From the NCBI RefSeq assembly GCF_032444005.1, contig NC_091291.1:18476001-18540000 (forward strand): DNA of 64,000 bases, read 5' to 3'. Each line of letters opens with the position of its first letter. The first letter of the stretch is position 1. Below the pieces are notes generated by a model, which was given only the letters and a program-made list of their open reading frames with translations, was not told the origin of the DNA and made no database searches. The stretch is from Ranitomeya imitator (taxonomy: Eukaryota). A program made the position numbers and the translations under genes. Below, piece by piece: positions 4,666-33,217 of this stretch.

Positions 4666-4980
4666 TCAGATGAGTATACAGAAAAAAAGTCCAAACAGAA
4701 AAAAGAGACCCTTGAAATATAAGGCAGCGTCAGTCCTACTGGATGGAGTAAACGGCCAACTACTGAGACCCCCAGAAGACGCTGCCATAGTAGTAGTAGT
4801 AGTAGTTGTTGTTGTTGTTGTTGTGGTTGTTGTTGTTGTCGTCGTAGTTGGGGATGCTGCTTTCCTACACGTTATCGTTCCCGAAATTGAGTATGTGGAA
4901 CAGAAATTGTCAGAAGCGCAGCCAAGTACAGACTCACCTATAAAATAAAGGGGATTAGAATAGTTTGTTAAGTTATGACA

Positions 4981-5025
<45 letters not shown>

Positions 5026-7997
5026 CATCAAACAACATTTTGGAGAGGATTGTAGAGTGTATAAATGTTGAACGGTGATCCGATAGAGGCTACTTCTCAG
5101 ATACCGCCGGTGCCATTTTGCTAGAGGAAAAAAAAATTGTCCTGACCATGATGGTGCCAACGGCGCATGCGCAGTAGCATCTATTGGATGCATCTATCGG
5201 ATCGCACAGCCGGGTGCGCCATTTTGAGAAAGATTTTTTTTTCCAGAATAAATGCACATCCCTAAATAAAATAATTTAATGCATATTATAGATACGATCC
5301 TGACCCCGCCACCTGCCTTGTGAATGTGATTTTTTTGTTCAATACATACTATATTCAGCATGTAAAATAGGGGGCAGGCCAGTGAGGGATCAGTGACCTG
5401 TCATAAGCCATCAGTATGAATGCATAAGCAGAGCATCACATAGAGACTCCGCCTACAGCCCTGCCCACAAACCGCCTACAGCTCCGCCCACAGACCACCA
5501 CAAACATCTCATTAACTGAAAAAAACAGATTAAACAAGAACCACAAGACAGATTTCAACACCAGGTATTATTGTAATCAGTATAACGGCTCCGACCTGAC
5601 GCTGTCTGTAGGTTACTGTCCACAATCCTGCGGACAGGATCCCTTTAAGACACTTCCAAGCAATTGCTAATATTATAATGATTAAGTTTCATCTACCAGA
5701 TAGTGGACATTCCCGTGAGAACTTGAGCCTCCAAATATGACCCCGATAGCATAGACGACTTTTCGATTTCATCGACTTCCAGAACTCTTGTAATTACCTG
5801 AGTTTTCGGTTACATTGAAGCAATTGTTCTGATTTCCTAGACATTGCAGAACTTGCGACGTTTTATTTACTGCAGAATCCAATGAAGGACACTGGAATCC
5901 ATTTGGGGTGACTGCAAAAAGACAAATAAAAATAATAGGTTAAGGGGAATAAACAAGAATTGCAACTTAGTTCCTATAATTACTCCTTCTATGGATTTCT
6001 ATTGAGCTGCGGGTGATTAGCCTAATAAGCAACACCATACGCTCAGATTTAGTTTTTTGTTTTTCTATACATGGTCCCTTTAAAAAAATAACAGACCACA
6101 CTTTGTCCCACAGTTGTCTCCCTACTGATCAGCCATAACCTGTGGTTCTACAAGTGTGACATTTTCCTGCAGCGCCACCACAGGTGAAATGATGCATTAC
6201 GTGTTGGCCACAAAAATCAACACGGAGCAGAGGTAATATCGAAATTTTTTGTTTGCGCGTCCAAACTTTTGACTAGTACTGTACATGCAAAGGAAAACAA
6301 AAATTTTAGGTTCTCATACCAGTTAACCATTAAAAATAGACAAAATGATGACAGCCAAGTGCTTTTCTATTTTTTTCATGAACCCATTTGAAATCGAGTT
6401 TTTACTGCCGAAATCGGCTCAATAACGGACATCGGACTTGTCTCTCCTTTTATTTTTACAGACAATTAAATAACAAAAATTATAGAAATTAATTTAAAAA
6501 AAAACATTCCATGACTATAAGGATAAGTTCATGAAGATTAATTAGCAATGGGATAATAGAAGCGCAAAAGTTACGTAAATAATTTAAATAAAATTCAGAT
6601 TACTTCTATTCTCCCTCCCTTTTTGATCTTTAGGATTATATTCAGTGGCATCTACTTGATGTTAATGTTTGTAATGTTGCCTTGTGTTCTGCTCTATAGC
6701 TATAAAGACGAGTTCCTTAGATGAATAATTTTTGCATTTTTGCACCAATTAGGTAATTTAGGTTACTTGTATTTTTTATAGCAATTTTTATTGTTTGGCT
6801 TTTACATGCATTTTTATTGTGTTCTTTTTGGTATGTGTTGTTTTATATTAAACCGCTTGTTTTGGAGATTTTCTATTTGTTCAGTTATCTTGTTTTATGT
6901 GTTTTACTCGTGGAAAATAGATGAACTGGACATAAGACTAGGGTCACATCCGAAAAAATCGGACTGATTTTAACAATCAATTTCGACTCTGATCATAGCA
7001 TGATCCGATTTTATTGAATGAGGAGAAAAATAAAATTTCTCAACATTCTCCATTCGGTCTGTCCATGAAAGTCAGACCACACTATGATTTTTTTTCCACG
7101 GATCCATAGTCATGGATGATCGATGATTGGACGCAACTCATGAATGCTGCGATTCTTACCTTGGACCGATTTAGTGGGAGGAAAAGATTGGACATGCACA
7201 AGGCCCAATAGACTAACATTGGTCCAGATGTTTGGTCGGAATGCAATCGGACCGAAACTACGGTTGTCTGCCAAATTCTAAGGGTGACACCACTTGTTGA
7301 TGACCACATGAGGCCAAAGGTTTGTCCACCGTGATGGCCATTTAATCATCAACTGTGGCACACCCTATTAGCATAGTGTAAAAGACTGATTGACTTGAAG
7401 GCTAAGGATGAGGGAACCTCTCAAGTCCCCCATTTGTCATCTTCCTAACTTCAGTACTAACGGTATCGAAACGTTAGGGCACAGAAACAAATAAACCTTG
7501 GAGACGTCTGAATGTATATAAAAAATAAAACCAGTATACTTACAGGTAGAGTCTGGTACGATGCAATTGGCATCACTGCAGCAGGAATTCAATATGTCTA
7601 TTTTATCAAATCCAGTCCAAAAGGAGTAGAAGTAGTTACAGTACTGGGGGTTTGCGCACCCTCTGACAATGCTGGCGGAACTTGTACCTAAAAAAGAAAA
7701 ATCACAACTAAACTGGTAATAGTGATAGAATAAATAAAATAAAAGTACCAAAGTAAAACGACTGTCACACTGAAGGCATCAAAACTATGAATTAACACAT
7801 GTGGAATTATATACTTAACAAAAAAGTGTGAAACAACTGAAATTATTTCTTATGTTCTAGGTTCTTCAAAGTAGCCACCTTTTGCTTTGATGTGATAATT
7901 CATAGTTTTGATGCCTTCAGTGTGAATGAACAATTTTCATAGTCCTGAAAATACAGAAAAATCTTTCAATGAGAAGGTGTGTCCAAACTTTTGATCT

Positions 7998-8074
<77 letters not shown>

Positions 8075-11000
8075 GAGCTTCTCACAAGATTAGAGCATCA
8101 TCAAAAAGTTAATTTATTTCAGTTCTTCAATACAAAAAGTGAAACTCATTTAGTATTCATTAGCTGTAAACCATAATCATCAACATTAACAAGTTATTTA
8201 TAGGTTTATTTCAATATTTGGGGACTCCGATAAATATTGTTTTGATTAATTTTGTGTGGGTCTTTTGGTCCATTTTGGTTATGACGTAGTATTAGATTAG
8301 TTTCTCATTTCTCTCAATTAACCTACCAGAATCCCTAGTAATTGACGCATAGCACAATTCTTCGCTTTCACAGGTTGTTTCAGGTCCGGTACATGTAAGG
8401 CTTGTTGCATTAATGCAAGTGGTGCAAACGAGACAATGACCTGCAGGAGGCAGAAAATTAATTATTTTAGTATAAAAGTAATCAAAATGAATGTAATCAC
8501 AGAGAATGGACCGTGCGTGCAAGATAATGCTGTGTTCCGAACAGCTCACAATACCTTTTAGGCCTAAGATCACAGAATGATAATCATATGAGAAGAAAAG
8601 CACAGCTAGGAACCAAAGTACTAAAAATTTAAAAAACTTTATTGAGAAAACAATGAAATCATATAAGAAGGATAACAAAGAAATGACAATGGTAAGCCAA
8701 AGTCATAGGACCACGGTTGGAAACAGGCAAAAAAGAAAGTACAGGCAAGGTAAACATTAATAAACATATTAGTCAGCTCAAAAAGTGCAAGTGCAATGTA
8801 CCACAAAGTGTGCCAATATAAGTAATAGAGATAACCGTATATCCAAGAGTGTGGGCATACTAGCAGTATAAGAGAAATCCCTAGAGGCTAACTGCCACAA
8901 TAGAAGAAAGAGCCCGAGCAATGACCATAGAACTAAAGTACATAAGTGTGCGGCAAATTACCTGAGAGACCATGGTGCCACCCACCCCAACGTGCGTTTC
9001 TGCGTAGTGCCTTCTTGTACCCCACAAGATCTGCTGTATTCTGGCAACACCCCACAAGACCTGCCGTATACATGAAACACTCCACAAGACCTGCCGTATA
9101 CTGGGAACACCCCATAAGACCTATTGTATATCAAGAACACCCCAAAAGACCTGCCGTATACTGGGAACACCCCACAAGACCTGCTGTTTACTGGGAACAC
9201 CCCACAAGACCTGCTGTATACAGGGAACACCCCACAAGACCTGCCGTAAACTGGGAACACCCCACAAAACCTGCCGTATACTGGGAACACCCCACAAGAC
9301 CTGCTGTATACTGGGAATACCCACAAGACCTGCCATATACCGGGAACACCCCACAAGACCTATGGTATACTGGGGACACCCCACAAGGCCTAATGTATAC
9401 AGGGAACACCCCACAAGACCTATGGTATACTGGGAACACCCCACAAGACCCGCTGTATACTGGGAACACCTCCCAAGACCTGCTGTATACAGGGAACACC
9501 CCACAAGACCTGCCGTATACTGGAAACATCCCACAAGACCTGCCGTATACTGGGAACACTCCACAAGACCTGCTGTATACTAGGAACATCGCACAAGACC
9601 TGCCATATACCGGGAACATCCCACAAGACCTGCCGTATACTGGGAACACCCCACAAGACCTGCTGTATACTGGAAACACCCCACAAGACCTGCCGTATAC
9701 TGGGAACACCCCACAAGACCTGCCGTATACTGGGAACACCCCACAAGACCTGCCGTATACTGGGAACACCCCACAAAACCTGCCGTATACTGGGAACACC
9801 CCTCAAGACCTGCTGTATACTGGGAACACCCAACAAGGCCTGCTGTATACAGTGAACACCCCACAAGACCTATGGTATACTGGGAACACCCCACAAGACC
9901 CGCTGTATACTGGGAACACCTCCCAAGACCTGCTGTATATAGGGAACACCCCACAAGACCTGCCGTATACTGGGAACACCCCTCAAGACCTGCTGTATAC
10001 TGGGAATACCTACAAGACCTGCCATATACAGGGAACACCCCACAAGACCTGTGGTATACTGGGAGCACCCCACAAGGCCTGCTGTATACAGTGAACACCC
10101 CACAAGACCTATGGTATACTGGGAACACCCCACAAGACCCGCTGTATACTGGGAACACCTCCCAAGATCTGCTGTATATAGGGAACACCCCACAAGACCT
10201 GCCGTATACTGGGAACACCCCACAAGACCTGCCGTATACTGGGAACACCCCACAAGACCTGCCGTATACTGGGAACACCCCACAAAACCTGCCGTATACT
10301 GGGAACACCCCTCAAGACCTGCTGTATACTGGGAACACCCAACAAGGCCTGCTGTATACAGTGAACACCCCACAAGACCTATGGTATACTGGGAACACCC
10401 CACAAGACCCGCTGTATACTGGGAACACCTCCCAAGACCTGCTGTATATAGGGAACACCCCACAAGACCTGCCGTAAACTGGGAACACCCCTCAAGACCT
10501 GCTGTATACTGGGAATACCTACAAGACCTGCCATATACAGGGAACACCCCACAAGACCTGTGGTATACTGGGAACACCCCACAAGGCCTGCTGTATACAG
10601 TGAACACCCCACAAGACCTATGGTATACTGGGAACACCCCACAAGACCCGCTGTATACTGGGAACACCTCCCAAGACCTGCTGTATATAGGGAACACCCC
10701 ACAAGACCTGCCGTATACTGGGAATACCCCTCAAGACCTGCTGTATACTGGGAATACTTACAAGACCTGCCATATACAGGGAACACCCCACAAGACCTGT
10801 GGTATACTGGGAACACCCCACAAGGCCTGCTGTATACAGTGAACACCCCACAAGACCTATGGTATACTGGGAACACCCCACAAGACCCGCTGTATACTGG
10901 GAACACCTCCCAAGATCTGCTGTATATAGGGAACACCCCACAAGACCTGCCGTATACTGGGAACATCCCACAAGACCTATGGTATACTGGGAACACCCCA

Positions 11001-12123
11001 CAAGACCTGCTGTATACTGGGAATACCCACAAGACCTGCCATATACCGGGAACACCCCACAAGACCTATGGTATACTGGGAACATCCCACAAGGCCTGCT
11101 GTATACAGGGAACACCCCACAAGACCTATGGTATACTTGTAACACGCCACAAGACGTGCTGTATACTGGGAACACCTCCCAAGACCTGCTGTATACAGGG
11201 AACACCCCACAAGACCTATGGTATACTGGGAACACGCCACAAGACCCGCTGTATACTGGGAACACCTCCCAAGACCTGCGGTATACAGGGAAAACCTCAC
11301 AAGACCTGCTATATACTAGGAACATCACACAAGACCTGTCGTATACCGGGAACACCCCACAAAACCTATGGTATACTGGGAACACCCCACAAGGCCTGCT
11401 GTATATAGGGAACACCCCACAAGACCTATGGTATACTGGGAACACCCCACAAGACCCGCTGTATACTGGGAACACCTCCCAAGACCTGCGGTATACAGGG
11501 AACACCCCACAAGACCTGCCGTATACTGGGAACACTCCACAAGACCTGCTGTATACTAGGAACATCACACAAGACCTGTCATATACTGGGAACATCCCAC
11601 AAGACCTGCCGTATACTGGGAACACCCCACAAAACCTGCTGTATACTAGGAACATCACACAAGACCTGCCGTATACCGGGAACACCCCACAAAACCTGCC
11701 ATATATCGGGAACGCTCCACAAGACCTGCCATATACCGGAACACCCCACAAGACCTGCTGTATACTGGAAACACCCCACAAGACCTGCCGTATACAGGGA
11801 ACACCCCACAAGACCTGCCGTATACTGGAAACACCCCACAAGACCTGTCGTATACAGGGAACACTCCACAAGACCTGCCGCATACTGGGAACATTCCAAA
11901 AGACCTGCAGTATACTGGGAACACCCCACAAGACCTGCTGTATACCGGGAACACCCCACAAGACCTGCCGTATATTGGAAACACCCCACAAGAGCTGTTG
12001 TATACAGGGAATATCACACAAGACCTATGTTTTTTCAGAAACAGTTCTGCTTAAATTTGCCTAAAACTTACCACGATGAATTAGGGCCAATACTAGACAG
12101 GAAAATAAAGTAAGGTTGTTCAT
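4666..12123 (-). CDS. Gene A: two-domain Ly6/uPAR (three-finger) protein, PLA2-inhibitor-gamma/PINLYP-like, with poly-Thr stalk and GPI-type C-terminus (231 aa)
   Basis: complement(join(12072-12123, 8327-8440, 7544-7687, 5798-5911, 4666-4937)). All introns are GT-AG phase 1, and 696 nt are in frame. Protein: MNNLTLFSCLVLALIHRG-HCLVCTTC...ELCY...RGCANPQYC...SCCSDANC...NGFQCP...[10 protein letters not shown]...LGCASDNFC...ITC...SP(T)20...[13 protein letters not shown]. Confidence 0.9.
7800..8180. repeat. (TA)n microsatellite (8002-8071) flanked by Tc1-TIR-like remnants, in gene A intron 2
   Basis: About 35 TA units. Flanks GTGTCCAAACTTTTGATCTGTAC and TACAGGAGCTTCTCACAAGATTAG resemble Tc1 terminal sequences. 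Confidence 0.65.
9020..12027. repeat. 30-bp minisatellite, about 100 copies, in gene A intron 1
   Basis: Unit CCCACAAGACCTGCCGTATACTGGGAACAC with variants and occasional 29-bp units. It explains all the overlapping ORFs at 8.9-12.1 kb. Confidence 0.97.
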
Positions 12124-12182
12124 CTTAGCAGCTCACACAGCGCAGTGTTGTGTCCTTCTGCTGTTAGCAAGTCTGGTATGTC

Positions 12183-12189
12183 TTTTATA
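12183..12189 (-). promoter_or_regulatory. TATA box of gene A
   Basis: TATAAAA on the minus strand, about 60 nt upstream of the ATG at 12123. The same motif sits at the same distance in gene B. Confidence 0.75.
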
Positions 12190-13551
12190 CTGTAGACTGA
12201 ATGCAACTGGTTATTTTATTGTGTAGTTTGTATATTATAGACGTATATTTGTAATTACATTATTCAGCACTTAATTGTCAGATAGACCTTAAGACTAATT
12301 CCATTTTTATGATTGAAGACATTGAAATTTAGTTGTTAAATTCCAAAAGTTGAAAAGCTGGTTTAACCCATGAGGTCAAGTACGGATGTCAGATAAATAT
12401 ATATCATTGATACTTTTTAGGAATTTATTACACTTATTGTAGCATGTTTTTCTTTTCAATGCACTTCTTCCCCTTCTTTCCATGATTTCACCCCATTACA
12501 AAACACCACCAATATTCTGTCCCCTTCTAACGTCATGTCTTCTCTTTTGCTCAAATTAAGTCTTTTAAAAACCAAACATCTTATGTTGCCCATTCTCTAC
12601 AAATTATAATATATTGTATACATGGTATTTAAATTTTGATGAAATATGGACATTTAGCTGTTTATTGTTTCCATTGTTTTATTGATGTTGCAGTGTACCG
12701 ACTAATGGATATATTAATTAATTGCCCCCTCTTCCTTTTTCCATCTTCCTTTTGAGTTTATGTTCTGCTATCATGTTCTATGATTTTAAAAAATGATCAA
12801 TAAATATTAAAATGTTATTTGTATTCATGTTTCATATCTATAGGTTATATACTCGTACCGTGAGTGAACTTGATGTTTCCAATTCAGTGGCAGTACCGCA
12901 ACTCTAGAAGAGCACGCACTTCAGCTTGTGGTTAGGTTTGACCAAGTTCTTTCCTTCTCTACCTATATTCAGATACTTGCACGTTGTCACCTGTACCTTA
13001 AAAATAAATCAGAATTTGCCCTTCCTTCACTAAGAAAAAAAGGAAAACCCTTGCACTAATTATTTTTGATTCTATCTTACCTCACTAAAAGACTGCTCAA
13101 AAATCCCCCTTCCAAATCTATCTTGAATGCAGCAGTCAGTCTCATCTCTTTGTCCAGCCACTACACCGACGACTCACTTTGTGTCAGCCACTGCACTGGT
13201 TACCCTTCCAGTATACAATATAATTTAAAGGACATCACTCTGAGCCACAAAGATTTCTGACTACCATCCTACTTGTGCTGCACCACCCTACTACTATTAA
13301 TTTTTGCTTACTACCTTACCAGTGGTCATCATAGTGCTTCACTGCTCTACATTTCTTTCCTATGTCCAAAGGCTGCTTTTTATAGAAGCCTCATCATGAC
13401 AATGACAACGGTCTTCAGCAGACCCCCAGCTGTCATGGTGTAAGAGTATGGCCGGGACTGTCATGTGCTTCTCTCTCAATAAGAAAACAGTCATATTTAT
13501 TGTATAGGAAAATACATTTTATTATGCATAGAACCTTATAGGCACCAAGGT

Positions 13552-13654
13552 GAGTACTCCTGGGGACCCACCACACCCGACGCACGTTTCACACTGAAAT
13601 GCTTCGTCCAAGTGCGAAACGCGCGTCGGGTGTGGTGGGTCCCCAGGAATACTC
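13552..13654. repeat. Near-perfect inverted repeat (39-bp arms), Penelope-like terminal sequence
   Basis: Arms 13552-13590 and 13616-13654 match at 37/39 with a 25-nt spacer. Each arm carries GAAACG[C/T]GCGTCGG. Confidence 0.7.
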
Positions 13655-14099
13655 CATTGGTAACTATACCCATGCTCATTATGTTATAACTTGTGCAATT
13701 TTTCATTGTTAGTTGTGCCTTCGTTTACATGGTCACACAAACACTATTGTATGTACATTTATTGAGAGCTGTAACCTATTGTTTATATGGTACTACTTGT
13801 TTGGAGGTATAACCTGGGCTACCCACCTGTTTTTTTGCCAGTACTTGTGGCAAGGTACCTAGCCTTTTATAGCTTTTATGGTGTTTAATAAAGTTTATGT
13901 ATATTTTACTGGCTCAGTATGAAGGTGTTTTTTTCGGTTTGTGTAGGTATAGGGCATAGAAAAAGGGTTTAGCTTTAGATATATATAAGATAGGACTGAG
14001 AACAGTGCAGTGGTCGGCACAATAGATTCAGGATGCAGATAGGAATAGTATAGGAAAGGTTAAAGTGTTCTCCACCAGCCCCAATATGGAAGGGGCAGT

Positions 14100-15504
14100 G
14101 GTACTTAAAAGGGGAACACTTCCTGCTTTAGATGAGCTGAGGAGATTAAATAAAAGTGTAGAGATCAGAAGTTGAAGGCCAGAAGGCTAGCGAGAACAAA
14201 AGATTATGGACAGTGTGGGCAGCATGAGAACGGCCGCGGCAAACTTCTGTGGACCTTCTGGGGATGCCTGGGACCTACAGCCTGAATTAGGCATGGAAGA
14301 GCCTGCCTTATTCTCTTCCCTCAAGGGGAAGCTGGATGGGAAACTACTTGAATGAATGTTGGGATGGGTTTCATGAGTGCTGGAGAGCCCGGTGGATTAT
14401 CCCAAGGGCCAGAGATGCCAGCCAGGATAGGAAAAGCTCAGGCTGAAATTATCGTAGCCACGTCTACATATTGTGCTATAATAACAATTCAACTTGGACT
14501 GCTCAGTAAAGTTAAACTGTTTGAAAATGACAAAGTGTCTTCTGTTGACTGTGCGGCTGTTCCTGGATCCGGGATCGTGGAGACAGCAGAGACCTCTGGC
14601 CAAAATGTGAGTGTTGTAGAATTCACACTAGGTTCAAGGAAAACAAGACACTATTTACTTGTGGGGTGCCAGGGTGTGGGAACAAAGCAGTTCCTTGCCC
14701 ATGACTACCGCCCTGTGCACCTTACAACGGCAATCAATTGGTGTCCAGTGATCGCATTGTAGGGAATCAGATGGGCATTTGGAATGGTGTTCCCCGAGGT
14801 CTGTGCTCTTTATATGCCATTGTCAGAGATTGACAGCAGCATTTAAGAGGTAAGCAGTGGGCAAAGCTCAGTTCTACCTGCTGCTGTTACAGGCAAATCT
14901 GGACTTATCTAATTCTCTGGTCCAAACTTCATTATCCAGATGAATTTGGGATATTATCACTGACCGCTATGTTCTTGATAGTTTAGATCCATCTTTGCCT
15001 GTTTGGCCTTATTCCACCAGATCAACTTCAGCCTAACAACTTGCATGGACAAATCTATGGAGCTGCATTGTGGTCCTCCAGTTCTTAGTCTTTTAAACTT
15101 CTCAGTGCAGACATCCTCTCTGCCGAGAGGTCGCCCTACGGCACAAACAGTGACTTCCTAGGTTTATACGCCTGTATGTTGTTGCTTTTACATCCCATAA
15201 TGTGCTTCTACTGTAGGACATCTAGGAAAGAATAAAATTTACTTACATGAAATTTTCATTTCCTTGAGGCCGTAGGCAGCAGTGGTTTCCTACCCATAAT
15301 TAATTCTTATTGCTGCATATTACACATGTTCTCTTTCTTGCTCAACTTTTTTGCAGTCATGCTTATTAACCTAATCGGCATGTTAAATATGTGTTTTATC
15401 ACTGCTTATTAACGTGTCTTACATCCAGAGCAGGTGTCCAGCGTTAACCCATTATGTGCTGCCCGCGGACTACAGGAAATAAATATTTCAGGAAAGTAAA
15501 TTTT
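14100..15504 (+). mobile_element. Degenerate DIRS-like (tyrosine recombinase) retrotransposon 3' relic
   Basis: Broken YR-like motifs YSTRSTSA* (15010-15036; cf. HSTRS) and QIYGAALWSS (cf. QIC.AATWSS). Imperfect 48-bp inverted repeats at 15234-15281 and 15457-15504 (AAAATTTACTTAC...). Confidence 0.6.
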
Positions 15505-17085: not shown

Positions 17086-18718
17086 CAGTTAGGTCCATAT
17101 ATATTTGGACAGAGACAGCATTTTTCTAATTTTGGTTATAGACATTACCACAATGAATTTTAAACAAAACAATTCAGATGCAGTTGAAGTTCAGACTTTC
17201 AGCTTTCATTTGAGGGTATCCACATTAAAATTGGATGAAGGGTTTAGGATTTTCAGCTCCCTAACATGTGCCACCCTGTTTTTAAAAGGACCAAAAGTAA
17301 TTGGACAGATTCAATAATTTTTAAATAAAATGTTCATTTTTAGTAGTTGGTTGAAAACTCTTTGTTGGTAATGACTGCCTGAAGTCTTGAACTCATGGAC
17401 ATCACCAGACGCTGTGTTTCCTCCTTTTTGATGCTCGGCCAGGCCTTCACTGCGGTGGTTTTCAGTTGCTGTTTGTTTCTGGGCCTTTCTGTCTGAAGTT
17501 TAGTCTTTAACAAGTGAAATGCTGCTCAATTGGGTTGAGATCAGGTGACTGACTTGGCCATTCAAAAATATTCCACTTCTTTGCTTTAATAAACTCCTGG
17601 GTTTCTTTGGCTTTATGTTTTGGATCATTGTCCATCTGTAGTATGAAACGACGACCAATCAGTTTTGCTGCATTTGGCTGGATCTGAGCACACAGTATGG
17701 CGGCTCTGAAGACCTCAGAATTCATTCGACTGCTCCTGTCCTGTGTCACATCATCAATAAACACTAGTGACCCAGTGCCACTGGCAGCCATGCATGCCCG
17801 CGCCATCACACTGCCTCCGCCATGTTTTACAGATGATGTGGTATGCGTTGGACCATGAGCTGGACCGCGCCTTCACCATACCTTTCTCTCTCCATCATTC
17901 TGGTAGAGGTTGATCTTGGTTCCATCTGTCCATAGAATGTTCTTCCAGAACTGTGCGGCTTTTTTAGATGTTGTTTAGCCTTTTTGTTCTTGATGCTTAT
18001 GAGTGGCTGCACCATGCAGTGAACCCTCTGTAGTTACTTTCATGCAGTCTTCTCTTTATGGTAGATTTGGATATTGATCCGCCGACCTCCTGGAGAGTGT
18101 TGGTCACTTGGTCGGCTGTTGTGAAGGGGTTTCTCTTCACCATGGAGATTATTCTGCGATCATCCACCACTGTTGTCTTCCGTGGGCGCCCAGGTCTTTT
18201 TGCATTGATGAGTTCACCAGTGCTTTCTTTCTTTTTCAGGATGTACCAAACTGTAGATTTTGCCACTCCTAATATTGTAGCAATTTCTCGGAAGGGTTTT
18301 TTCTGTTTTTGCAGCTTAAGGATGGCTTGTTTCACCTGCATGGAGAGCTCCTTTACCGCATGTTTACTTCACAGCAAAACCTTCCAAATGCAAGCACCAC
18401 ACCTCAAATCAACTCCAGGCCTTTTATCTGCTTAATTGAGAATGACATAATGAAGAGATTGCCCACACCTGTCCATGAAATAGCCTTGGAGTCAATTGTC
18501 CAATTACTTTTGGTCCCTTTAAAAACAGGGTGGCACATGTTAAGGAGCTGAAACTCCTAAACCCTTCATCCAATTTTAATGTGGATACCCTCAAATGAAA
18601 GCTGAAAGTCTGAACTTCAACTGCATCTGAATTGTTTTGCTTAAAATTCATTGTGGTAATGACTATAACCAAAATTAGAAAAATGTTGTCTCTGCCCAAA
18701 TATATATGGACCTAACTG
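17086..18718 (-). mobile_element. Full-length Tc1 transposon with long TIRs and a frameshifted transposase
   Basis: TA-CAGTTAGGTCCATATATATTTGG...CCAAATATATATGGACCTAACTG-TA, with TIRs of about 220 bp. The transposase is split over ORFs 17997-18341, 17827-18015 and 17507-17809 ([26 protein letters not shown]). Confidence 0.95.
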
Positions 18719-18924
18719 TATATTCCTCACAAGTATATGTATAATTATCCTGCATGCAAGCACTTTTTAATGTCACAGAGTGATTTATACTTTTCCCTAG
18801 TGAGATACATGTACAATTTATCCAATTTGAACACGTTTGGTTTCACCTGTGTGAATTATGAGTATTTATATTTGTTTACATACCTCTGTTCCATTGTTCT
18901 GGCTATATCTATGTCCCTTATAAG

Positions 18925-19742
18925 TAGTAACATAGTAACATAGTAACATAGTAACATAGTTAGTAAGGCCGAAAAAAGACATTTGTCCATCCAGTTCAGC
19001 CTATATTCCATCATAATAAATACCCAGATCTACGTCCTTCTACAGAACCTAATAATTGTATGATACAATATTGTTCTGCTCCAGGAAGACATCCAGGCCT
19101 CTCTTGAACCCCTCGACTGAGTTCGCCATCACCACCTCCTCAGGCAAGCAATTCCAGATTCTCACTGCCCTAACAGTAAAGAATCCTCTTCTATGTTGGT
19201 GGAAAAACCTTCTCTCCTCCAGACGCAAAGAATGCCCCCTTGTGCCCGTCACCTTCCTTGGTATAAACAGATCCTCAGCGAGATATTTGTATTGTCCCCT
19301 TATATACTTATACATGGTTATTAGATCGCCCCTCAGTCGTCTTTTTTCTAGACTAAATAATCCTAATTTCGCTAATCTATCTGGGTATTGTAGTTCTCCC
19401 ATCCCCTTTATTAATTTTGTTGCCCTCCTTTGTACTCTCTCTAGTTCCATTATATCCTTCCTGAGCACCGGTGCCCAAAACTGGACACAGTACTCCATGT
19501 GCGGTCTAACTAGGGATTTGTACAGAGGCAGTATAATGCTCTCATCATGTGTATCCAGACCTCTTTTAATGCACCCCATGATCCTGTTTGCCTTGGCAGC
19601 TGCTGCCTGGCACTGGCTGCTCCAGGTAAGTTTATCATTAACTAGGATCCCCAAGTCCTTCTCCCTGTCAGATTTACCCAGTGGTTTCCCGTTCAGTGTC
19701 TAATGGTGATATTGATTCCCTCTTCCCATGTGTATAACCTTA
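18925..19742 (-). mobile_element. 5'-truncated CR1 LINE (RT C-terminus plus 3' tail)
   Basis: ORF 19049-19654 has CR1 ORF2 motifs (LYKSLVRPHMEYCVQFWAP, LEKRRLRGDLITMYKY, FFTVRAVRIWNCLP). The 3' end is four copies of an 8-bp tail repeat (TAGTAACA on +). Confidence 0.93.
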
Positions 19743-23566: not shown

Positions 23567-24511
23567 TGTTAGGTGTCGAGTTCCCGCCTCTGCACAGGGG
23601 GAACCTCAAACCATCTCCGCTGTGGTCTCCCATTCTTCTCCAGCCACAGTGGAGACGTCGGTCCCAGCGTCTGGCTCAGCCTGATACTGGACGACTGGTT
23701 ACTACTGCCCTTCCAGGCTCTGCCTTTGTAGCCAGCACTGATCAGCAGCGAGCAGGTCTTTCTGGGACTGAGTCCTGCTTTTCCCATACTGAGCATGCCC
23801 ACGGGACGACCTCCCATTGGAGGTTGGGGATCACATGCTCAGGTCCTGTTGCGGCTCCTATTGGACCATCTGGAAGGTCTTGTAGCACTGCCGCTATAAA
23901 AGGTTTGCATGGCCCCTCGGCCATGCGCTAGTGTATACTTGAAAACGTGTGTGTGTTGATGTGTGAAAGTCGCTCATTAATTATCCCCTCCCTTGTGTAT
24001 GACTGCTCGCGTAAGGAGGATGATTGCTATCTAGCGCCCGACAGAGCCATCAGTACTTAACACACGATACAGCGTCTTATGGCAGTGACTGCCAGTGCTG
24101 CGCCGTGCGCTATTAGAGCGCTTTCCTGGCCCAAGTCTGGGTGGTTAGTGGCGTCCGCCAGAGCGGCACCGCACGCACTCTTGTGCATAAAAATTATTAT
24201 TTAAGTTATACTCTGACACCCACTAGCGATGTCGAGCGCAAGTGGTCTAGACGAACTCTAATCCTGAGTCTAGGGGTAGAGTTCTGTGACTCCATGCTTG
24301 CGCTCTTTGTGCGGTACCGCGACCCTGTGACGCAACAGGGTTCGCTTCCTTCACACAGGGTGAAGCTAACCCGTGTGTGTATCCACATTGTACCGCCATA
24401 TAGTCCATCATTACTCAGCAGCAGGTTCCATCTCTGCATGGTGGACCCCGGGCTGCGAACGCACCTTATACCATCTCTCTAATTATTTGGTGCGTTCCGC
24501 AAGCCCTAACA
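23567..24511. mobile_element. Solo LTR (945 bp)
   Basis: TGTTAG...CTAACA termini, with a 5-bp TSD CTGCC at 23562-23566 and 24512-24516. Confidence 0.85.
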
Positions 24512-24875
24512 CTGCCTTCAATGTCATCATCTTTTATAGCGCCTGTGATAGTCACTTGTAATTGGCTGAAGAAGACCATGTGATGTGATAGCTGCAAGGC
24601 ATTATGGGGAAACTTCCAGTTGCCCCTGATCTCATGTTCGAATTAGCTGGTAAGGAAAGATAGGAACGCAGGCCTAATATTGTGGGTGCAATACTTCCTC
24701 AAGCAACCCGCCAAAAAGCCTCCAAGTATAAAAAATACAGTGAAAGCAGCACTCCGATAGAAATAAGTGAAAAATTGGACTTTATTCACACAGATATCTT
24801 TTTCGATTTGAGTACTACTTCCACTAGTATCTCCCTCTCTCTCCATTTCTCTTTCTTTCTCTCTCTGTATATTTA

Positions 24876-25620
24876 CAGTATCTTGAATAACTATTGATAC
24901 CCCATGAATTTTTCCACATTTTTTCATATTACACCCACAAACTTAAATGTATTTTATTGGAATTTTATGTTACATACCAACAAAAAGCAGCAAGTATTTG
25001 TGAAGTGTAAAAGAAATGATATAGGGTTTTCAAAATACTTTGAAAATATATATTTAAAAATTGTGAGGTGCATTTGTATTCAGCCCCCTTGAGTCAATAC
25101 TTTGTAGGACCACCTTACACTACAAATACTGCCGCAGTGTTTTGTCTCTATTAATTTTGAAAATCTGGAGGTGACATTTTTGCACATTTGCTCTAGGTCA
25201 ATGAGATTGAGTGGAGACATCTGTGAATGGCAAGTTTCTAATCTTGCCATAGATTCTCAATGGGATTTAGGTCAGGACTGTGACTGAGCCATTCACATAC
25301 ATGAGTACGCTTTGATCTAAACCATTCATTGTAGCTCTGTCACAATGTTTAGGGTCATTGTTCTGCTCCAGTCTCAAGGCTTTTGCAGCCTCTCACAGAT
25401 ATTCCTCCATGATTGACCTGTATTTAACTCCATCTATCTTCCCATAAACTGTGACCAGCTTCCCTGCCCCTGCTGAAGACAAGCTTCCGCACAGCATGAT
25501 TCTGCCACCACCATGTGTGATGGTGTGGATGGTGTTTTCAGGGTGATGTGCAGTGTTAGTTTTCAGCCACACATAGCATTTTGCATTAAGCCCAAAAAGT
25601 TCTATTTTTGTCAAATAAAA
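24876..25620 (-). mobile_element. Truncated Tc1 element
   Basis: TA-CAGTATCTTGAATAACTATTGATACCCC TIR, and transposase fragment 25393-25614 (KIELFG...[10 protein letters not shown]). Confidence 0.8.
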
Positions 25621-25949
25621 CCAAAGAAGAATATTTTGGGCTAAATGAAAAACGCTATGTGGTGTTGCATATGTTGATTGTAAACGGAAGCTAAACTCAG
25701 AAAGGGGATGAGCTGCAGTACTAGATGTGGACTATCGACAAGGGCGAGGCTGTATCTGGAAAAAAAAAACATGCTCAGTAATCCTTAGCAATACTTTTCT
25801 TTTAATATCTGTACATTATTTGTTACAATATATTTTAAATTTCATGATATAATTTTTTAATAATAATGACCATCTTATAATACAATAATAGTTATTAGAT
25901 TGTTCTTTTTTTTTTCATTTTATGTTATATATACAAGTGTACAATTATT

Positions 25950-26238
25950 TCAGATGCATATACATAAAAAAAGTCCAAACAGAAAAAAGAGACCCTTAAA
26001 ATATATGGCAGCGTCAGTTCTACTGGATGGAGGAAACGGCCAATTTCTCAGCCCCTTAGAAGAGACTGCCGTAGAAATATCAGTAGTAGTAGTTGTTGTA
26101 GGAGATGATGTTGCATTCACACAGCTTATCACTTCTATATCTGATTTGTTCATGGAACAGACATAGTCGTTTGCACAACCAAGCACAAACTTAAAATCTC
26201 CTGGGGAAAAAAAATTAAAAAATAAAATATATTGCTAT

Positions 26239-26276
<38 letters not shown>

Positions 26277-29200
26277 GGTACATACTGTAATTATAGAGAT
26301 TATTATTAATTTTAATAAAGGAAAATGACAGAGAGGATTGTAAAGGGTATAAATGTTGCAGTCTCCCCTTCAGGTAAAGGAACTGTAGAGATGGTGACGC
26401 AGAAAATGCAGACATATATATATATATTGATAATGAGTAAATTTGCCGAAACTCGAATTTAGCAAATCACTCGAATCAGGTCAAGATCATGTAAAAAAAT
26501 AATGCTATTAACCAGAAGATATGCCGTTAATCTGCAGGTTAATAGTGATCTTTAGCTACCCGGTGTATGCCCTGAGTGCCCCGCTGCCGGTAGGAAATAA
26601 CCTTTATTCTTTCCGGCAGCCTTGGGCTTTCAGTCATAGGGGAGGGCCAGTGTGGCTTCAGTCACTGCTCAGTGGATAGTGAGCAGCGGCTGTAACTGCA
26701 TCCTGGCATTTACTGATATCCGGCTCAGCATTAGAGATGGCTGTCAGTCAGTGCTGGGAGTGCAGTTACAGCCGCAACTCACTATGTACTGAGCAGTGAA
26801 TGAAGTCATGCTGATCTTCCATATGACTGAAAGCTAGAGGCCGCCAGGAGGAATAATGTTTATTTCCTCCTGGCAGTGGGGCTCTCAGTGCAGGTGCCAG
26901 ATAGCTTTAGAACACTATTAACCTCCAGATTAACGCCATATCTGCAGGTTAATAGCGTGTTTTTTACATGACAAGTTCCCTGAGTAAGTCTCTGAGGTCA
27001 TGACACATCATGACATGCAATAATTTAGGCCCTGACTAGTCCTCAGTCAATGCATTTCAAGTAATTGTGAAGTTAGAGGCCAACTCAGCGCAGAGTTAAA
27101 ATGCTGGAATAACTGAAGAGTCAGGAGGAACCGGTGTGGAGGAACAGACGTCGGCTACCGCAGTGGGACAGGGTAATGGTGAGGGTTTTTTTCTTCATTC
27201 ATTTCTTATGAAATCACAAAATTATTCAGCTCCAGGGTAATCTGAATACATTTATAAACTTCCAGGTAAATTCAATTTGCTAATTAAAATGAAATAACCA
27301 AACATTCACAACCTAATAAAATAACTTCAGGAGGTGTAACCAAGCTGCAGGTTAACACTCACAAGACACGTCCTAGATGAAGTCAAGTAGGCGAAACTTG
27401 AGTTGTGCAATCTTATAAATCTGAGTATTGAACACTTTTTTTAACTGCATTTGTTCATTGGAATCTTGTGAGTACAATATTTGTTTTGGGGCGCTATGTC
27501 TTATTATTAGCAGTGTTTCACTATTGAAGTCTAGTTTGGTTTTCCTTATACTACTAGACCAGTGGGAAGTGAGATCCAGCTTCCGCTGAAGGTCAGATAT
27601 GTGTGTGCACTATTCAGAGCGTTATTGTGGGAAACCACAGACATCATTATCACCGTACAAGCTCCTGATGCCTCTGGCTACATTAATTTAATCTGCGCGG
27701 TGTACACGCATGGCATGTTTTCAAAAATACTCAGCATCAAAAATTCACCAAAAACTTATTGTGGGAACGCAGGATAATTTGCAAATATTGCTCAAACTTG
27801 TGGTCCGCTTTAAATTAGTTTCAAACAATCTATTAACATAACATTTTTTCTTCTTCAACTGGTAATTGAACATTCACGTGAGAACCTGAGAATCCAAGCA
27901 TTTAACAGATATCATACACAACTTTTCTATTTCATCGACTTCCAGAACTCTGGTAATTACCTCTGATTTGTGTTACATTGAAGCATTTATTCTGATTTCC
28001 CAGACATTGCAGAACTTGTGGTGTATTGTCTATTCCAGAAACTAATGAAGGACACTGGAATCCATTTCTGGTGACTGCAAACAGACGGATACGCATAATT
28101 AAGTTACGGGAAATAAGCAAGAAATGAGCCCTAGTCACTATAATTACCACTCCATTGGCTTTCTATTGAACTCCTGTTGGTGAGAACTTAGAATAATAAA
28201 CAGCAGCCTTTGTTCTGGCTACAGCAGAACAAAGTGAAGGTTCTGGAGTGGCCATCTCAGTCTCCTGACCACAATATCATTGAGCCACTCTGGGGAGATC
28301 TCAAGCGCGCAGTTCATGCTAGACAGCCCAGGAATTTACAGGAACTGGAGGCTATTTGCAAAGAAGAGTGGGCAGCTTTAGCATCTGAGAAAATAAAGAA
28401 CCTCATCCACAACTACCACAAAAGACTTCAATCTGTCATTGATGTTAGACGGGGCAATACACGGGATTAAAAAATGGGGTATGTGAACTTTTGATCAGGG
28501 TGATTTGGATATTTTGAGTTGTCATTATGATTTAAAAAGAGAAAACAGTAGTTTGACAATAAATGGCTTCACCCAACCACTAACCATGAGTGGAGAAAAA
28601 GTTTTGGTGTTATCATTAATATTCTCTGAAAAAAGGTCAAGAAAGCAAAAATTCTGGTGGGGTATGTAAACATTTGAGCACAACTATAAACAAATGAATG
28701 CTTGGGTGCCTGGTCAACAACTGCCGACTTGCTCGGATTGTTACCAGTGCTGATTACTGGGTGGGCAGTAACAACACAAAAACAGAGTTGGCTACCTCCT
28801 CCTCCTCCACCTTTTCCATTTACAACGCCACGTCCACCTCAACTTGGACCTCCAGTTCCTGGTTCAAGATGATCCTTCCTTTTGCAGCCCCCTAACCCTT
28901 ACTATGATCATTTTATAACCATCTTACAGCACCAAAGTTTGGGTTCCCATTGACTTTTATGAGGTTCCGGTTCAGGTACCGATAGAGTTCTGGTACCCGA
29001 ACCAAACTTTGAACTATAGTTTGGTGGAACCCGATGAACTGAACCATCCATGGGTCTGCTCATCCATAGTGTGAATTATATGAGTATGGCTACATTCCCA
29101 CGATGAGCTGCGTGTTTTTGGCAGGTCGAAAAACGCATTGTTTTACAGCTTCAGCAAAGTGGATGGGATTTACAGAAATCTCATGCCCACTGTGCTTCTT

Positions 29201-32200
29201 TTTTTACTGAGTGTTAACTGACCAATCCTCAACATGCCAATTTCTCTTTTTTGTGAGAATATTCTCCATAGACTCGCATTAGATGCAGAAAAATCGCAAA
29301 TAAAAAAATGCACATGGTGGAAATGCAACAAAATCACATGCAATCCGCACCTCAGTATATCAATAAAGTTTTGTCACAGCCAAATACCGGGAAGTATCAA
29401 AAACAACCTAAAACAAAGCAGCTTTATTTAAAGCATGACACACCAAAAATAGTCAAAAAAGTCATAAAAACACATGTAAAAAACACACGCACAAAAACGC
29501 AATGAAAAAACACAATTAACCAAATTTACATAATAGGTGCAAAAATTCTACAGTGGCAATAGTCTATGTGCACAGAAGTTCTTATTGAGCTTCCGCGGTG
29601 TTAAAACATATAAAAAAATGTATATGTGGTTTTTATCAGTGGATTTTTTCAAATCTCATTCAAGTCTAAAAAAGAAAGTCCAGAAATAAAATGCATATTT
29701 ACAGCAAAAAAACAAAAAACATCCCAGGAACCTAGATGAGAACCGGACTCACGACCCCCATTTGTCATCTTCTTAACTACTACTGTACTAATGTTATTGG
29801 AGGCTGTAGGACACAGAAACCGACCATTCTAGGAGATGTGACTATAAATAAAAAATAAAATCAATATACTTACAGGCAGAATCTGGTACGATACAATCAC
29901 CGTCACTGCAGCAGGTAGACGATAAATCGAATTCATCAGATCCGTTCAAATAAGAGTAGGAGGTGTTACAAAACTGGAGGCTTTGACACCCTCTTTCAAT
30001 GCTGGCGGTATTGCTGCCTAAAAATAAAAAAAACAAGTCAAAACTAAATTGATAGTGATAATACAATAAAAAATAATAATAATAATAAAAAAATGTCAAA
30101 TAGTCAACAACCGTCGAGGCAGTGAGGATTTACCAATTTTTAAATTAGTTAACAATTCAATGCAAAGTATAAAAAAATGAAACTTGACCTCATGGGCATT
30201 AGGAAGCTCAAGTGCAGAGCCATAGAGCTACCTTTACCATAAATATTCTTTTCTTTAATTTTATTTTTCAGTTCCCAGAGAACTCCTTTAATCAGCTTTA
30301 AGAAATATATTAATTACTTGGTGGTATTATTGCTATATCTGCAGGAAGAAGAAAAGTCCGAGGTTCTCTTGGAATTTTTTTTAGATGCGTTAGATTGTGA
30401 TTTTTTTTCCGAAAGTCCAGAGTTTACTGTTAAGGACGTAAGTCTAGAAAAAAGACTGTTTTTGCATAAGAGACAAAATTAGATAATGTAAGCGTTGCTC
30501 CTCTCTGCCCTGCTCCACTGCAGCATACTGCAGCTCTTGGATTTTCTGTTCTTGCTAACGCTCATCCAGGCTTTTTGGCTTCCTCATCCAGTCAATGTCA
30601 AAGAAACGCTCTGACGAAGGTCCGGTGTGGACCGAAAACGTTTAGCACTTTTGTTTGTCTGGATGCATCAATAAACTAAGAAGCTTTTCTTCTCAAATTG
30701 AGTGCCAAGTTTTATTCATCTGTAGATAATGTAAGTGTCATGATCCAGTTCTAAAGTTGTGTTCAGCTGTCTTATCTCTGGACTGGTCATGTGGGAGTTA
30801 ATCCCCTCTGCCTCACTTTGAAGCTGGCTGAGCTATTTAAGTCCTCTGCAGCCTGTGGGCCAGTGTCAGCTATAGTTCATGCTGCACGGTTTGAACACCT
30901 GACCTGGATACTTGTACTAGTGTTCCTTTTGCCTCTGACTGCCTGCACCCGTTTATGACTTGTTCTGACCTCTGGCTTGTAACCTGATTCCGTCTTACGT
31001 CTCTCGTTTTGGTTACCACGTTCCTGGTAGGCTCTGACTTCTTGCTTGTCCCCGACTATTCTTCTGACTCCCCCTGTGTACTGCGCTGATCTCTCTGTGT
31101 ATGACCTTGGCTTGTCTGACTTCTCTTTCATTACCTGTGACACCTGTGTTGTTGTTCAGTGTTGCTGCGCTGTGTGTACAACCTCTTTTCCTTAACCAGC
31201 GCCCCCTGGTGGAGGTTGCTCTATACTGCACTGCAGCAGCACATTACAGTAAGGCTTTAGGATTCAACAGTATCAGATACAAGAAGAGATTCAACAAAAG
31301 AAAACAAAGCTAAACCACCTGTACGTCTCTTACACAAAACAAGCCCAGCCCCCGAACATAATAAATGTATAATAAAAAAAAATAATAATAATACTCACCT
31401 CACCGTTGACCTCACATGGCAACACCAGAACTGGAAGTCTTTTTTAAAATTATTTTTATACAATCACATTCACAGAACATTAACTTTGCTGAAATAACAC
31501 GAGACAAAGTAGAAGGCAAAATCATATAATATTGCGTTAGTAGCTAATTTTTTCCAATTAACCTACCAGAAGTCTTAACAATTATCAGGTAGCACAATTC
31601 ATCGTTTGCACAAGTAACTTGTGAACCGGTACAAGTAAGACTAGTTGTATTAAAACAGCTGGTGCAATTGAGACAATGACCTGTGGGAGGCAGAAAATTA
31701 TTTATTATATTATAAAATAATAAAATCAAATCAATTAAAATGATTGCAATCATAAAGAGCGGACAGTGTGTGCGACATAATGCTGTGGTTACAATCCTTT
31801 TAGGCAAAAAATTGCAGAATGTAGAATACACAGTACTTACATTTATTAAACCAATAAAATCAGTAGTAAACTGGTGCACCAAACAATGCAATACATAGGC
31901 AAAAGTAAGAAATAACTCACCAGGGTCTTGCTTCAATGCCATACGCTAAGTAATAACTGTATAGACTTTGACACAGGGCTTCAGGGGTTTTCATAGGGTG
32001 AGTTTATAAACATCCTTTTTAGAGATCTGATCCTAACCATCACTTTTGCGACACCTCGCCTAATCATCATTTTTAGGACATTTGACAATGACTGAACGTC
32101 CTTCTGTGGGCGCCATCTCCAACCATCCTTATTAGGATGCAACTTTATAACTCCCACCGATTGGGGAGGAATTCAGTTGACCTATGATTCTACCTGTGAC

Positions 32201-33217
32201 ATAAGGTTAATATATTCAATTTGGTAGAGTACGAGAAAGTGTGCAGAGGCGCGGGAGTGTGATGAGGGGCTACAGTATAGAGACTGAGAAGTATAAGGGG
32301 GACACAGTGTGAAGGGGCCAAGTACAGAAAGGAGGAAGCATGACAGGGATACCTAAGATAGAGATAGTTTTGTTGTTATAGCTAATAAGGGCAGATAGTG
32401 ACGATTATAAACCATAAGGCGATAAGTTAGCATCTGTACGGTTGCTTTTCTAGTGATGTATTTCTGAATTGATGGTTGTTCTGGTGATGTATTCATGTAC
32501 TGATGATGGTTCTGGTGATGTATTTATGTACTGTTATTGGCTCTGTTCCTGTACACATGTATCAATTAATAACTCATCAGAAAACATGATATATGGCTAT
32601 GTATGGATAGATGGCATCTGTACGGTTGCTTTTCTAGTGATGTATTTCTGAATTGATGGTTGTTCTGGTGATGTGTTCATGTTCTGATGGTAGTTCTGGT
32701 GATACATTTATGTACTGTTGGTGGTTCTGGTCCTGTATTTATGTACTGTTATTGGCTCTGTTCCTGTACATATTTATCAATTAATAACTCATCAGATAAC
32801 ATGATATATGGCTATGCTATTAAAGTATTTTGCCATCTGATAAGTTAAAGATTGTTACATCTGCATTTATGTTGGGAGCAATAATTCTAAAATTCCACCG
32901 CCATGAAAGAGTAAAATGATGAATTAATTATATCTGCAGTGCTCTGCATTACCTGACACCTTTCTATCATAGCCAGCAGTCGCTTTCCTATAATTTGTGC
33001 TACAGTCACTCTTCTGTGGGATCAGGTGAGATAGACTAATTTTTCACTGCTCATTCACTGGTGTGACCCAATTGACTAGATCTTTTTATAATGTATAGTA
33101 GTCATTTAAAATATTTATGACTGATATAATAAATAAATAAGTGACTAAATAAGCCTAAAACTTACCATAGTGAATCAGGGCCAATAATAGACAGCAAAGT
33201 AAAGGAAGATTCTTCAT
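25950..33217 (-). CDS. Gene B: paralog of gene A, two-domain Ly6/uPAR protein with short Thr stalk and GPI-type tail (224 aa)
   Basis: complement(join(33166-33217, 31567-31680, 29874-30017, 27961-28074, 25950-26200)). Exon sizes 52/114/144/114 match gene A, all introns are GT-AG phase 1, and 675 nt are in frame. Protein: [26 protein letters not shown]...RGCQSLQFC...TCCSDGDC...NGFQCP...LGCANDYVC...ISC...[13 protein letters not shown]. Confidence 0.9.
28205..28686 (+). mobile_element. Tc1 3' fragment inserted in gene B intron 3
   Basis: [25 protein letters not shown]...EEW (ORF 28210-28470), then a TIR ending ...TTTGAGCACAACTA-TA. Confidence 0.85.
30601..30680 (+). other. Penelope-like 3' end with a degenerate hammerhead-ribozyme-like core
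   Basis: GCT-CTGACGA-A-GGTCC(GGTGT)GGACC-GAAA-ACGTTT-AGC followed by AATAAA at 30670-30675. Confidence 0.5.
30736..31248. mobile_element. Solo LTR-like element (513 bp) in gene B intron 2
   Basis: TGTCATGA...ATTACA termini, with a 5-bp TSD GTAAG at 30731-30735 and 31249-31253. Confidence 0.8.

Follow-up and report, generated by a model that had tools for sequence, protein, structure and literature searches.

Genes A and B, which lie on the minus strand of a 64,000-nucleotide stretch of the Ranitomeya imitator genome (NCBI RefSeq assembly GCF_032444005.1, contig NC_091291.1, positions 18,476,001 to 18,540,000; this whole stretch is referred to as the window and positions are counted from its first letter), are tandem paralogues encoding two-domain LU (Ly6/uPAR) glycoproteins of hyloid frogs that are probably anchored to the membrane by glycosylphosphatidylinositol (GPI), directed by a signal in the last exon. 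The precursor would enter the endoplasmic reticulum, the signal peptide would be cut off after G-H-C to leave a chain that starts L-x-C-x-x-C and has 10+6 Cys, the linker behind the second domain would be O-glycosylated, and the last 20 residues would be exchanged for the GPI anchor at the Asp of T-D-A-A. The two LU domains would then be held by a short stalk outside the plasma membrane and act there as a binding module, as those of uPAR, C4.4A and TEX101 do. The literature treats amphibian two-domain three-finger proteins, namely the sodefrin precursor-like factors (SPF) and the 'PLA2-inhibitor-like' proteins (PLA2, phospholipase A2), as secreted and soluble, and our literature search found no paper linking these proteins with a GPI anchor.

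A six-frame reading of the minus strand gave two sets of four Cys-rich exon-like segments, the splice sites of which were then read base by base, and a scan for an ATG followed by a hydrophobic stretch and a phase-1 GT donor located one signal exon upstream of each set (starting at 12123 and 33217). The closed models of both A and B are intact five-exon genes with GT-AG splice sites and introns that are all in phase 1 (Table 1). They consist of a signal exon, two exons for each LU domain and a C-terminal signal within the last exon, which is the generic layout of LU genes, whose last exon also carries the GPI signal (PMC6600238). The model for B is identical to residues 20–243 of P0003, a RefSeq 'uncharacterized protein' of R. 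imitator, and P0003 was used for the whole-protein steps for this gene. A word search of the protein collection, made with the full P0003 and with its separate regions, returned only P0003's own cluster and no protein corresponding to gene A; the joined model of gene A was used for counting, alignment, the tree and the ratio of nonsynonymous to synonymous substitution rates (dN/dS), and homology searches with A were done exon by exon. The two predicted proteins are 59% identical in amino acid sequence, with a dN/dS of 0.57 overall, 0.52 in domain 1, 0.32 in domain 2 and about 1 in the linker and tail. A search of representative sequences with the last exon of B led to P0001, an 'uncharacterized protein' of Ranitomeya variabilis, the 90% cluster of which includes two R. 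imitator isoforms. P0002, a 986-aa open reading frame made up of 14 tandem 70-residue units, also matched the tail of B (E 1.9e-13), a strength that is due to the repeats in P0002; a single unit scored only 23.5 bits, and this match was set aside as chance.

Gene B is transcribed and spliced, and its transcript includes the tail. Logan contigs from four sequencing runs were placed on window positions 25900–31750, a stretch that begins downstream of B exon 1, and an 881-nt RNA contig from run X1 joins exons 5, 4, 3 and 2 of B at the predicted junctions with 0–2 differences per exon. Contigs from runs X2 and X3 support parts of the splicing of exons 2–5. Transcripts that skip exon 5 had been named beforehand, in a sequence-only reading of this DNA, as a finding that would speak against a membrane-tethered product, and among the contigs of the four runs on this stretch no form of the B transcript without exon 5 was seen. 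Moreover, exon 5 encodes half of domain 2, and hence skipping it cannot yield a tidy secreted isoform.

A profile search to which words from genes A and C were added recovered 15 frog proteins, those of the gene-C type at E 1e-26 to 1e-15, gene C being a third two-LU gene in the window (Table 1). Alignments built from exon fragments placed pieces of domain 2 on domain 1 and served only as the source of words for this search. In a tree confined to frog 'PLI-like' proteins (PLI, phospholipase A2 inhibitor) and built without named SPF or snake sequences, A and B fall together with R. variabilis P0001, Dendropsophus P0009 and Leptodactylus P0010 (support 99/100), a group referred to here as the A/B type, and A and B diverge from one another inside the dendrobatid lineage (support 80/89). 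The A/B-type clade has a long stem (1.38) and long terminal branches, and the branches of the gene-C-type proteins are much shorter.

The A/B-type proteins are set apart by their cysteines. A matrix of Cys positions in 17 family members places Cys in all ten LU columns in domain 1 of both A and B, while domain 2 of both starts NGFQCPSL and has only six Cys, in LU columns 1, 4, 5, 6, 7 and 8. The columns for Cys2 and Cys3 of domain 2 hold Cys in all 12 of the gene-C-type proteins in this alignment versus Leu, Ser or a gap in all five of the A/B type. In the LU consensus ten Cys are paired 1–5, 2–3, 4–6, 7–8 and 9–10 (PMC6600238) and, as Cys2 pairs with Cys3, the change in domain 2 of A and B amounts to a paired loss. 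The sequence-only reading had proposed both the six-Cys second domain and its origin by paired loss, and the matrix together with the known 2–3 pairing bears out the two proposals for both genes. In Leptodactylus P0010 a second paired loss has taken Cys2 and Cys3 from domain 1 as well. Domain 2 of A and B, like that of their relatives, lacks the CCxxxxC end, and absence of the 9–10 pair (CCxxxxCN) is common to tetrapod two-domain proteins generally (PMC8904931). The Asn that follows Cys10 is missing from domain 1, the end of which reads CCSDANC-I in gene A and CCSDGDC-I in gene B; with Thr or Ser at this position in the gene-C type, the whole frog family deviates. Taken with the tree, these alignments show the A/B type as a distinct, fast-evolving clade of hyloid frogs that, on present sequences, is defined by the paired loss of Cys2 and Cys3 from domain 2.

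An additional Cys, overlooked in the sequence-only reading, is found at residue 20 (in GHC), just before domain 1, and is retained in all five A/B-type proteins. The corresponding column holds Ser or Ala elsewhere in the family and a Gly lies two residues earlier. Thus, Gly at −3 and Ser, Ala or Cys at −1 occur across the family, which fits a signal peptidase site between the Cys and Leu of G-H-C-L and a mature chain that begins L-x-C-x-x-C. By a rule-based assessment, the signal peptide has a hydrophobic core at residues 4–15 and this same site fits the (−3, −1) rule. Judged from these sequence features, Cys20 is quite likely to be removed together with the signal peptide. The pattern of 10+6 Cys put forward earlier holds if cleavage occurs after Cys20, giving 16 Cys in the mature chain, and would otherwise have to be changed to 11+6, or 17 Cys.

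Assignment to the LU fold rests on profile matches and on structure prediction. The Pfam UPAR_LY6 profile matched domain 1 of B (P0003) with 23.3 bits (E 9.3e-5), just below the curated cut-off of 24.8 bits, and the Dendropsophus orthologue P0009 with 29.6 bits, above it; in domain 2 of the A/B-type proteins this profile detected nothing. As no single exon holds a whole LU domain, Pfam scans exon by exon gave only weak matches (UPAR_LY6, E 0.057). When the PDB was searched using phmmer, the best match to A exon 3 was the corresponding portion of uPAR domain 3 (E 0.7), and the single match to the whole of P0003, a Trp-repressor-like protein (E 0.92), was judged to be chance. AlphaFold run on a single sequence reached a pLDDT (the program's per-residue confidence) of only 32; AlphaFold2 with an alignment of 16 sequences reached 69 overall, with 80–87 in domain 1 and 60–82 in domain 2. 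In the latter model, the linker (residues 176–212) is disordered, with a pLDDT <50, and the signal peptide and the C-terminal tail are helical. Using the AlphaFold model, Foldseek returned uPAR first (E 9e-6), followed by C4.4A, CD177, TEX101 and GPIHBP1, and VIA-align superimposed it on domains 2–3 of human uPAR (residues 92–270) with a Z of 12.2 and a root-mean-square deviation of 3.4 Å over 145 aligned residues that are 24% identical. Domain 2 alone gave a Z of 5.9 to a three-finger toxin. Hence, the model shows both domains of the A/B-type protein with a predicted LU three-finger fold.

Beyond the last Cys, A and B have 56–66 further residues. In A, 46 residues separate the last Cys of domain 2 from T-D-A-A, 63% of them Ser or Thr and including a run of 20 Thr, and in B the linker is 36 residues long with 44% Ser or Thr and a run of only six Thr; in the linker of R. 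variabilis P0001 no Thr run exceeds three residues. The term 'mucin stalk' used in the sequence-only reading is therefore reasonable for A but generous for B, and the stalk is modest overall. Both proteins then end with A-A-(L/I)-Y-F-K followed by 14 uncharged hydrophobic residues (GLFFLFGLF..) with a mean hydropathy of 2.8, directly before the stop codon, and so the hydrophobic end without cytoplasmic residues that had been described for them is indeed present in both. A rule check for GPI signals, which required omega and omega+2 to be small residues and a short spacer to be followed by a hydrophobic stretch up to the C-terminus, left Asp211 in A and Asp204 in B, each in D-A-A, as the only candidate omega sites, with a predicted 4-residue spacer and 20-residue propeptide. 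That A and B are 'sheddable', as was also suggested in the earlier reading, is speculation.

The tail extends beyond Ranitomeya. The Dendropsophus ebraccatus locus L001 has the same five-exon layout, and the last exon of P0009 in this locus encodes half of domain 2, a Ser/Thr/Pro linker and a tail that includes LYSKGLLLLLGLF. The last exon of the upstream tandem neighbour (4346–4807 in L001) encodes a longer Ser/Thr stalk of ~35 residues and the same tail core, and a downstream neighbour is represented by its first exon (26795–26893), which makes at least three tandem A/B-type genes. As the Dendropsophus neighbour is tailed too, tandem arrays of tailed genes are common to hylids and dendrobatids. 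The tail core, Y-x-K/Q-G-L-hydrophobic5-G-L-F, is kept in the two Dendropsophus genes to a degree exceeding the 40% overall identity, and this conservation across frog families argues for a function. The tail DNA and the short 3′ untranslated region up to an ATAAA-like signal are likewise kept between Ranitomeya and Dendropsophus (window 25950–26020 and 4666–4736; L001 4690–4810 and 19115–19250). In gene-C-type proteins generally, the last Cys is followed by no more than a few hydrophilic residues, although Spea P0014 and Engystomops P0018 combine a domain 2 of the gene-C type with a stalk and a hydrophobic end. Gene C itself (P0008) continues past ..SNAL into another spliced exon and has no hydrophobic run at its end, and downstream of it no alignable remnant of the A/B-type tail was found.

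Several observations weigh against GPI anchoring of A and B or against the broader picture. With 14 residues the hydrophobic run is short, and only four residues make up the spacer. The R. variabilis orthologue has D-S-D in place of D-A-A, no site in it passes the GPI rule, and its end is frame-shifted and includes a Glu. A contig from run X3 (depth 7.5) has an extra base at window position 25982, an A on the plus strand, by which T6 becomes T7 on the coding strand. The third frame would then be read in the tail of B; the extra base may reflect either an allele or an error of assembly. The DNA of the tail is rich in T and each of its three frames encodes hydrophobic residues and then a stop, so that the hydrophobicity of the tail is robust to slippage and, to that extent, weak as evidence of selection. 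Cys20 may remain in the mature protein, leaving an odd number of 17 Cys, and a chain of this kind could form a disulfide-linked dimer. Leptodactylus P0010 has no hydrophobic end, though its gene model, which extends over 103 kb, may be in error, and the expression evidence is confined to gene B.

The rival that survives these observations best accepts A and B as real two-LU glycoproteins and takes their hydrophobic end to be something other than a GPI signal, namely a short uncleaved anchor, a propeptide removed before secretion, or an end that binds lipid or a partner. We consider this unlikely. It would account for the shortness of the run and the Lys directly before it, for the residues at the omega site varying in R. 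variabilis and Dendropsophus, and for the secreted, water-soluble nature of close relatives (the gene-C type and SPF). However, a stretch of 14 uncharged residues that lacks a cytoplasmic stop-transfer residue is too short to span the bilayer stably. Also, LU proteins are a classic GPI-anchored family in which the GPI signal is located in the last exon, as it would be in A and B, and the best structural relatives are GPI-anchored.

That A and B are membrane-bound PLA2 inhibitors, i.e. true orthologues of the gamma-type PLI of snakes that shield cell surfaces from secreted PLA2, appears improbable. If the signal is cut after GHC, the total of 16 Cys is that of Crotalus neutralizing factor (CNF), for which the count of 16 given for the crotaline gamma inhibitor in the sequence-only reading is correct (PMC5175389). 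The nearest ESM-Atlas clusters carry names such as PINLYP-like and PLI gamma subunit B-like, with uPAR-like clusters also among the look-alikes, and these can be used only as leads. Frog relatives bear names of the same kind, the gene-C-type proteins being listed by NCBI as 'phospholipase A2 inhibitor gamma subunit B-like', 'PINLYP-like' or 'NAI-like', but the names were assigned automatically and the nearest frog proteins so named are only 27–34% identical to the A/B type. The Pfam profile PLA2_inh (PF02988) found no match in P0001, P0009 or P0010 (E up to 1) or in parts of P0003 (E up to 10), and just four gene-C-type relatives were matched, all below threshold. The fast evolution of the clade also suits changing ligands better than a conserved enzyme target. 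Hence 'PLI-gamma-like', as A and B had been called, can stand as a superfamily label for two-domain three-finger proteins and does not hold as a statement of family membership, and PLA2 binding is one possible ligand activity of A and B.

In the tail DNA, the short frame is used by A and B of R. imitator and by Dendropsophus P0009, and a longer frame (..VY.S..IVN.Y., with an acidic residue) by R. variabilis P0001 and the Dendropsophus neighbour, and the switches between frames from gene to gene or species to species occur at T-runs. Over the last 150 nt of exon 5, A and B share 86% identity, compared with 73% in the domain-1 exons, and the synonymous rate (dS) in the tail is 0.08 versus about 0.5 elsewhere, a pattern in the aligned sequences that suggests gene conversion or constraint at the nucleotide level. 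It is nevertheless even less probable that the tail is an evolutionary by-product of a T-rich 3′ region prone to homopolymer frame flips, in genes that (at least for A) are drifting towards loss of function, as could be argued from the three hydrophobic frames, the frame differences between the two Ranitomeya species and between the two Dendropsophus paralogues, a dN/dS of about 1 in linker and tail and the missing protein annotation for A, since reading frames and splice sites are intact in A and B, the LU domains have dN/dS values of only 0.32–0.52, every structural Cys is retained, dendrobatid and hylid frogs share the tail core at an identity above the overall level, and the B transcript includes the tail.

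If A and B are GPI-anchored as we favour, a wider interpretation may be put forward, tentatively and with more against it than for it. The A/B-type clade might be the membrane-anchored arm of the amphibian SPF/PLI-gamma-like radiation, conserved and tandemly amplified in hyloid frogs, which either retains an ancestral anchored state, as in the two-LU proteins of teleosts, or supplies cell-surface partners or releasable precursors for the adjoining secreted, pheromone-like paralogues, with the C-terminal signal being retuned by homopolymer frame switching. Teleost two-domain proteins form the outgroup in SPF trees (PMC8904931). A conserved frog clade in which this ectodomain is combined with a linker and a GPI-type signal would in itself add a cell-surface branch to the amphibian two-domain three-finger family, help to trace the origin of secreted pheromone-like proteins from anchored LU proteins, and make RefSeq 'uncharacterized proteins' named candidates for simple cell-biological tests.

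Table 1. Positions of genes A, B and C and of their exons and protein features in the window
Feature	Window position	Strand	Content	Basis
Gene A	4666..12123	-	Five exons, 231 codons, intact open reading frame, canonical splice sites, phase-1 introns	
A exon 1	12072..12123	-	ATG and h-region of the signal peptide (MNNLTLFSCLVLALIHR + 1 base)	Scan for ATG, hydrophobic stretch and donor; 85% nt identity to B exon 1
A exon 2	8327..8440	-	Signal end (GHC) and first half of LU domain 1 (LU Cys1–5)	Exon model, Cys matrix
A exon 3	7544..7687	-	Second half of LU domain 1 (Cys6–10, CCSDANC)	Exon model
A exon 4	5798..5911	-	First half of LU domain 2, NGFQCPSL, 3 Cys (Cys1, 4 and 5; Cys2 and Cys3 lost)	Exon model, Cys matrix
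A exon 5	4666..4937	-	Rest of domain 2 with 3 Cys, then Thr/Ser linker, hydrophobic tail and stop	Exon model
A Thr run	4789..4848	-	20 Thr codons in a run (ACN microsatellite)	Codon count
A candidate omega site and propeptide	4669..4731	-	Candidate omega Asp (4731–4729) and predicted 20-residue C-terminal propeptide, AALYFK + 14 uncharged hydrophobic residues	Rule-based
Gene B	25950..33217	-	Five exons, 224 codons from ATG 33217	Equals P0003 residues 20–243
B exon 1	33166..33217	-	Signal peptide	Scan and exon model
B exon 2	31567..31680	-	GHC and first half of LU domain 1	Exon model; RNA contig piece 31566–31681
B exon 3	29874..30017	-	Second half of LU domain 1	Exon model; RNA contig piece 29874–30016
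B exon 4	27961..28074	-	First half of LU domain 2 (NGFQCPSL)	Exon model; RNA contig piece 27960–28074
B exon 5	25950..26200	-	Second half of domain 2, linker (T6, 26099–26082), candidate omega Asp 26015–26013, predicted propeptide 26012–25953, stop	RNA contig piece 25906–26199, no difference
Gene C	51450–55567	-	Third two-LU gene, 10+8 Cys	Public partial protein P0008

Some further features of these genes and of the DNA around them were recorded. RefSeq isoform X1 of B begins at an upstream ATG (33274), 10 nt past a TATAAAAG (window 33274–33285), the conserved start being that at 33217, and isoform X2 has an alternative first exon within intron 1 (ATG 31942; window 31885–31942) that provides no signal peptide. 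The contig from run X1 has a two-base difference in B exon 4 (28032–28033) that replaces Ile with Ala in loop 1 of domain 2 and is a nonsynonymous polymorphism in a fast-evolving protein. Intron 1 of A consists mostly of a 30-bp minisatellite of ~100 copies (84% matches; 9019–12026), which produces spurious long open reading frames on both strands. In the 64-kb window, no copies of the tail exon beyond those of A and B were found. Tc1/mariner-type transposase remnants and a reverse transcriptase fragment are present at 17507–18341 and 19049–19654, between A and B, and at 28210–28470 in B intron 3; the very high depth of RNA contigs at 28056–28839 is due to the copy in this intron.

Among known systems, the closest to hand is the gene-C type, which belongs to the same cluster (gene C is 18 kb from B) and shares with A and B the five-exon phase-1 layout, a domain 1 with ten Cys and a domain 2 that lacks the CCxxxxCN end. 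It differs in that domain 2 keeps Cys2 and Cys3 (8 Cys), Ser or Ala occupies the position of the extra Cys, and the end is hydrophilic, as expected of a secreted protein. The SPF resemble A and B in their two-domain three-finger fold, tandem arrays, fast evolution and 'partial' second domain (PMC4757389, PMC11659521, PMC8904931). They are described as secreted, water-soluble pheromones and have 8+6 (alpha), 10+8 (beta), 10–12+8 (gamma) or 11+9 (sigma) Cys (PMC4757389, PMC11659521), and no published class has 10+6; A and B, at 10(+1)+6, also carry a hydrophobic end, unlike these secreted proteins. Snake gamma PLI likewise have two three-finger units and 16 Cys, a total shared by A and B if the signal is cut after Cys20, but they are secreted plasma oligomers with neither a Ser/Thr linker nor a hydrophobic end. 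The example is CNF, a secreted, N-glycosylated protein with a mature chain of ~181 residues, 16 Cys and two three-finger units (PMC5175389).

The anchored LU proteins are similar in other respects. The best solved structural match, uPAR (PLAUR), has two exons per LU domain, as do A and B, and is GPI-anchored, but it has three LU domains, a domain 1 that lacks the 7–8 disulfide and no Ser/Thr linker. C4.4A/LYPD3 has a Ser/Thr/Pro-rich region after two LU domains. It is GPI-anchored, its structures 6iom and 6ion were matched by the model, and it resembles A and B in its two LU domains, linker and end, though the match is weaker (Z 6.9, domain 1 only), the linker is much longer and its domain 1 is without the 7–8 disulfide. 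In all mammalian multi-LU proteins, domain 1 lacks this disulfide (PMC6600238), and A and B keep it. The likeness to LYPD3/LYPD8 noted in the sequence-only reading therefore holds for LYPD3 as one of architecture and does not extend to orthology. A tandem array on chromosome 21 of the zebrafish codes for GPI-anchored two-LU proteins, which are also known in mammals with other Cys patterns (PMC6600238); in the zebrafish proteins both domains retain all ten Cys, unlike A and B. GPI-anchored multi-LU proteins are thus well known in mammals and fish, and A and B are not a new kind of protein. What is new here is an SPF/PLI-like 10+6 ectodomain on a short stalk with a GPI-type end, annotated so far just as 'uncharacterized'.

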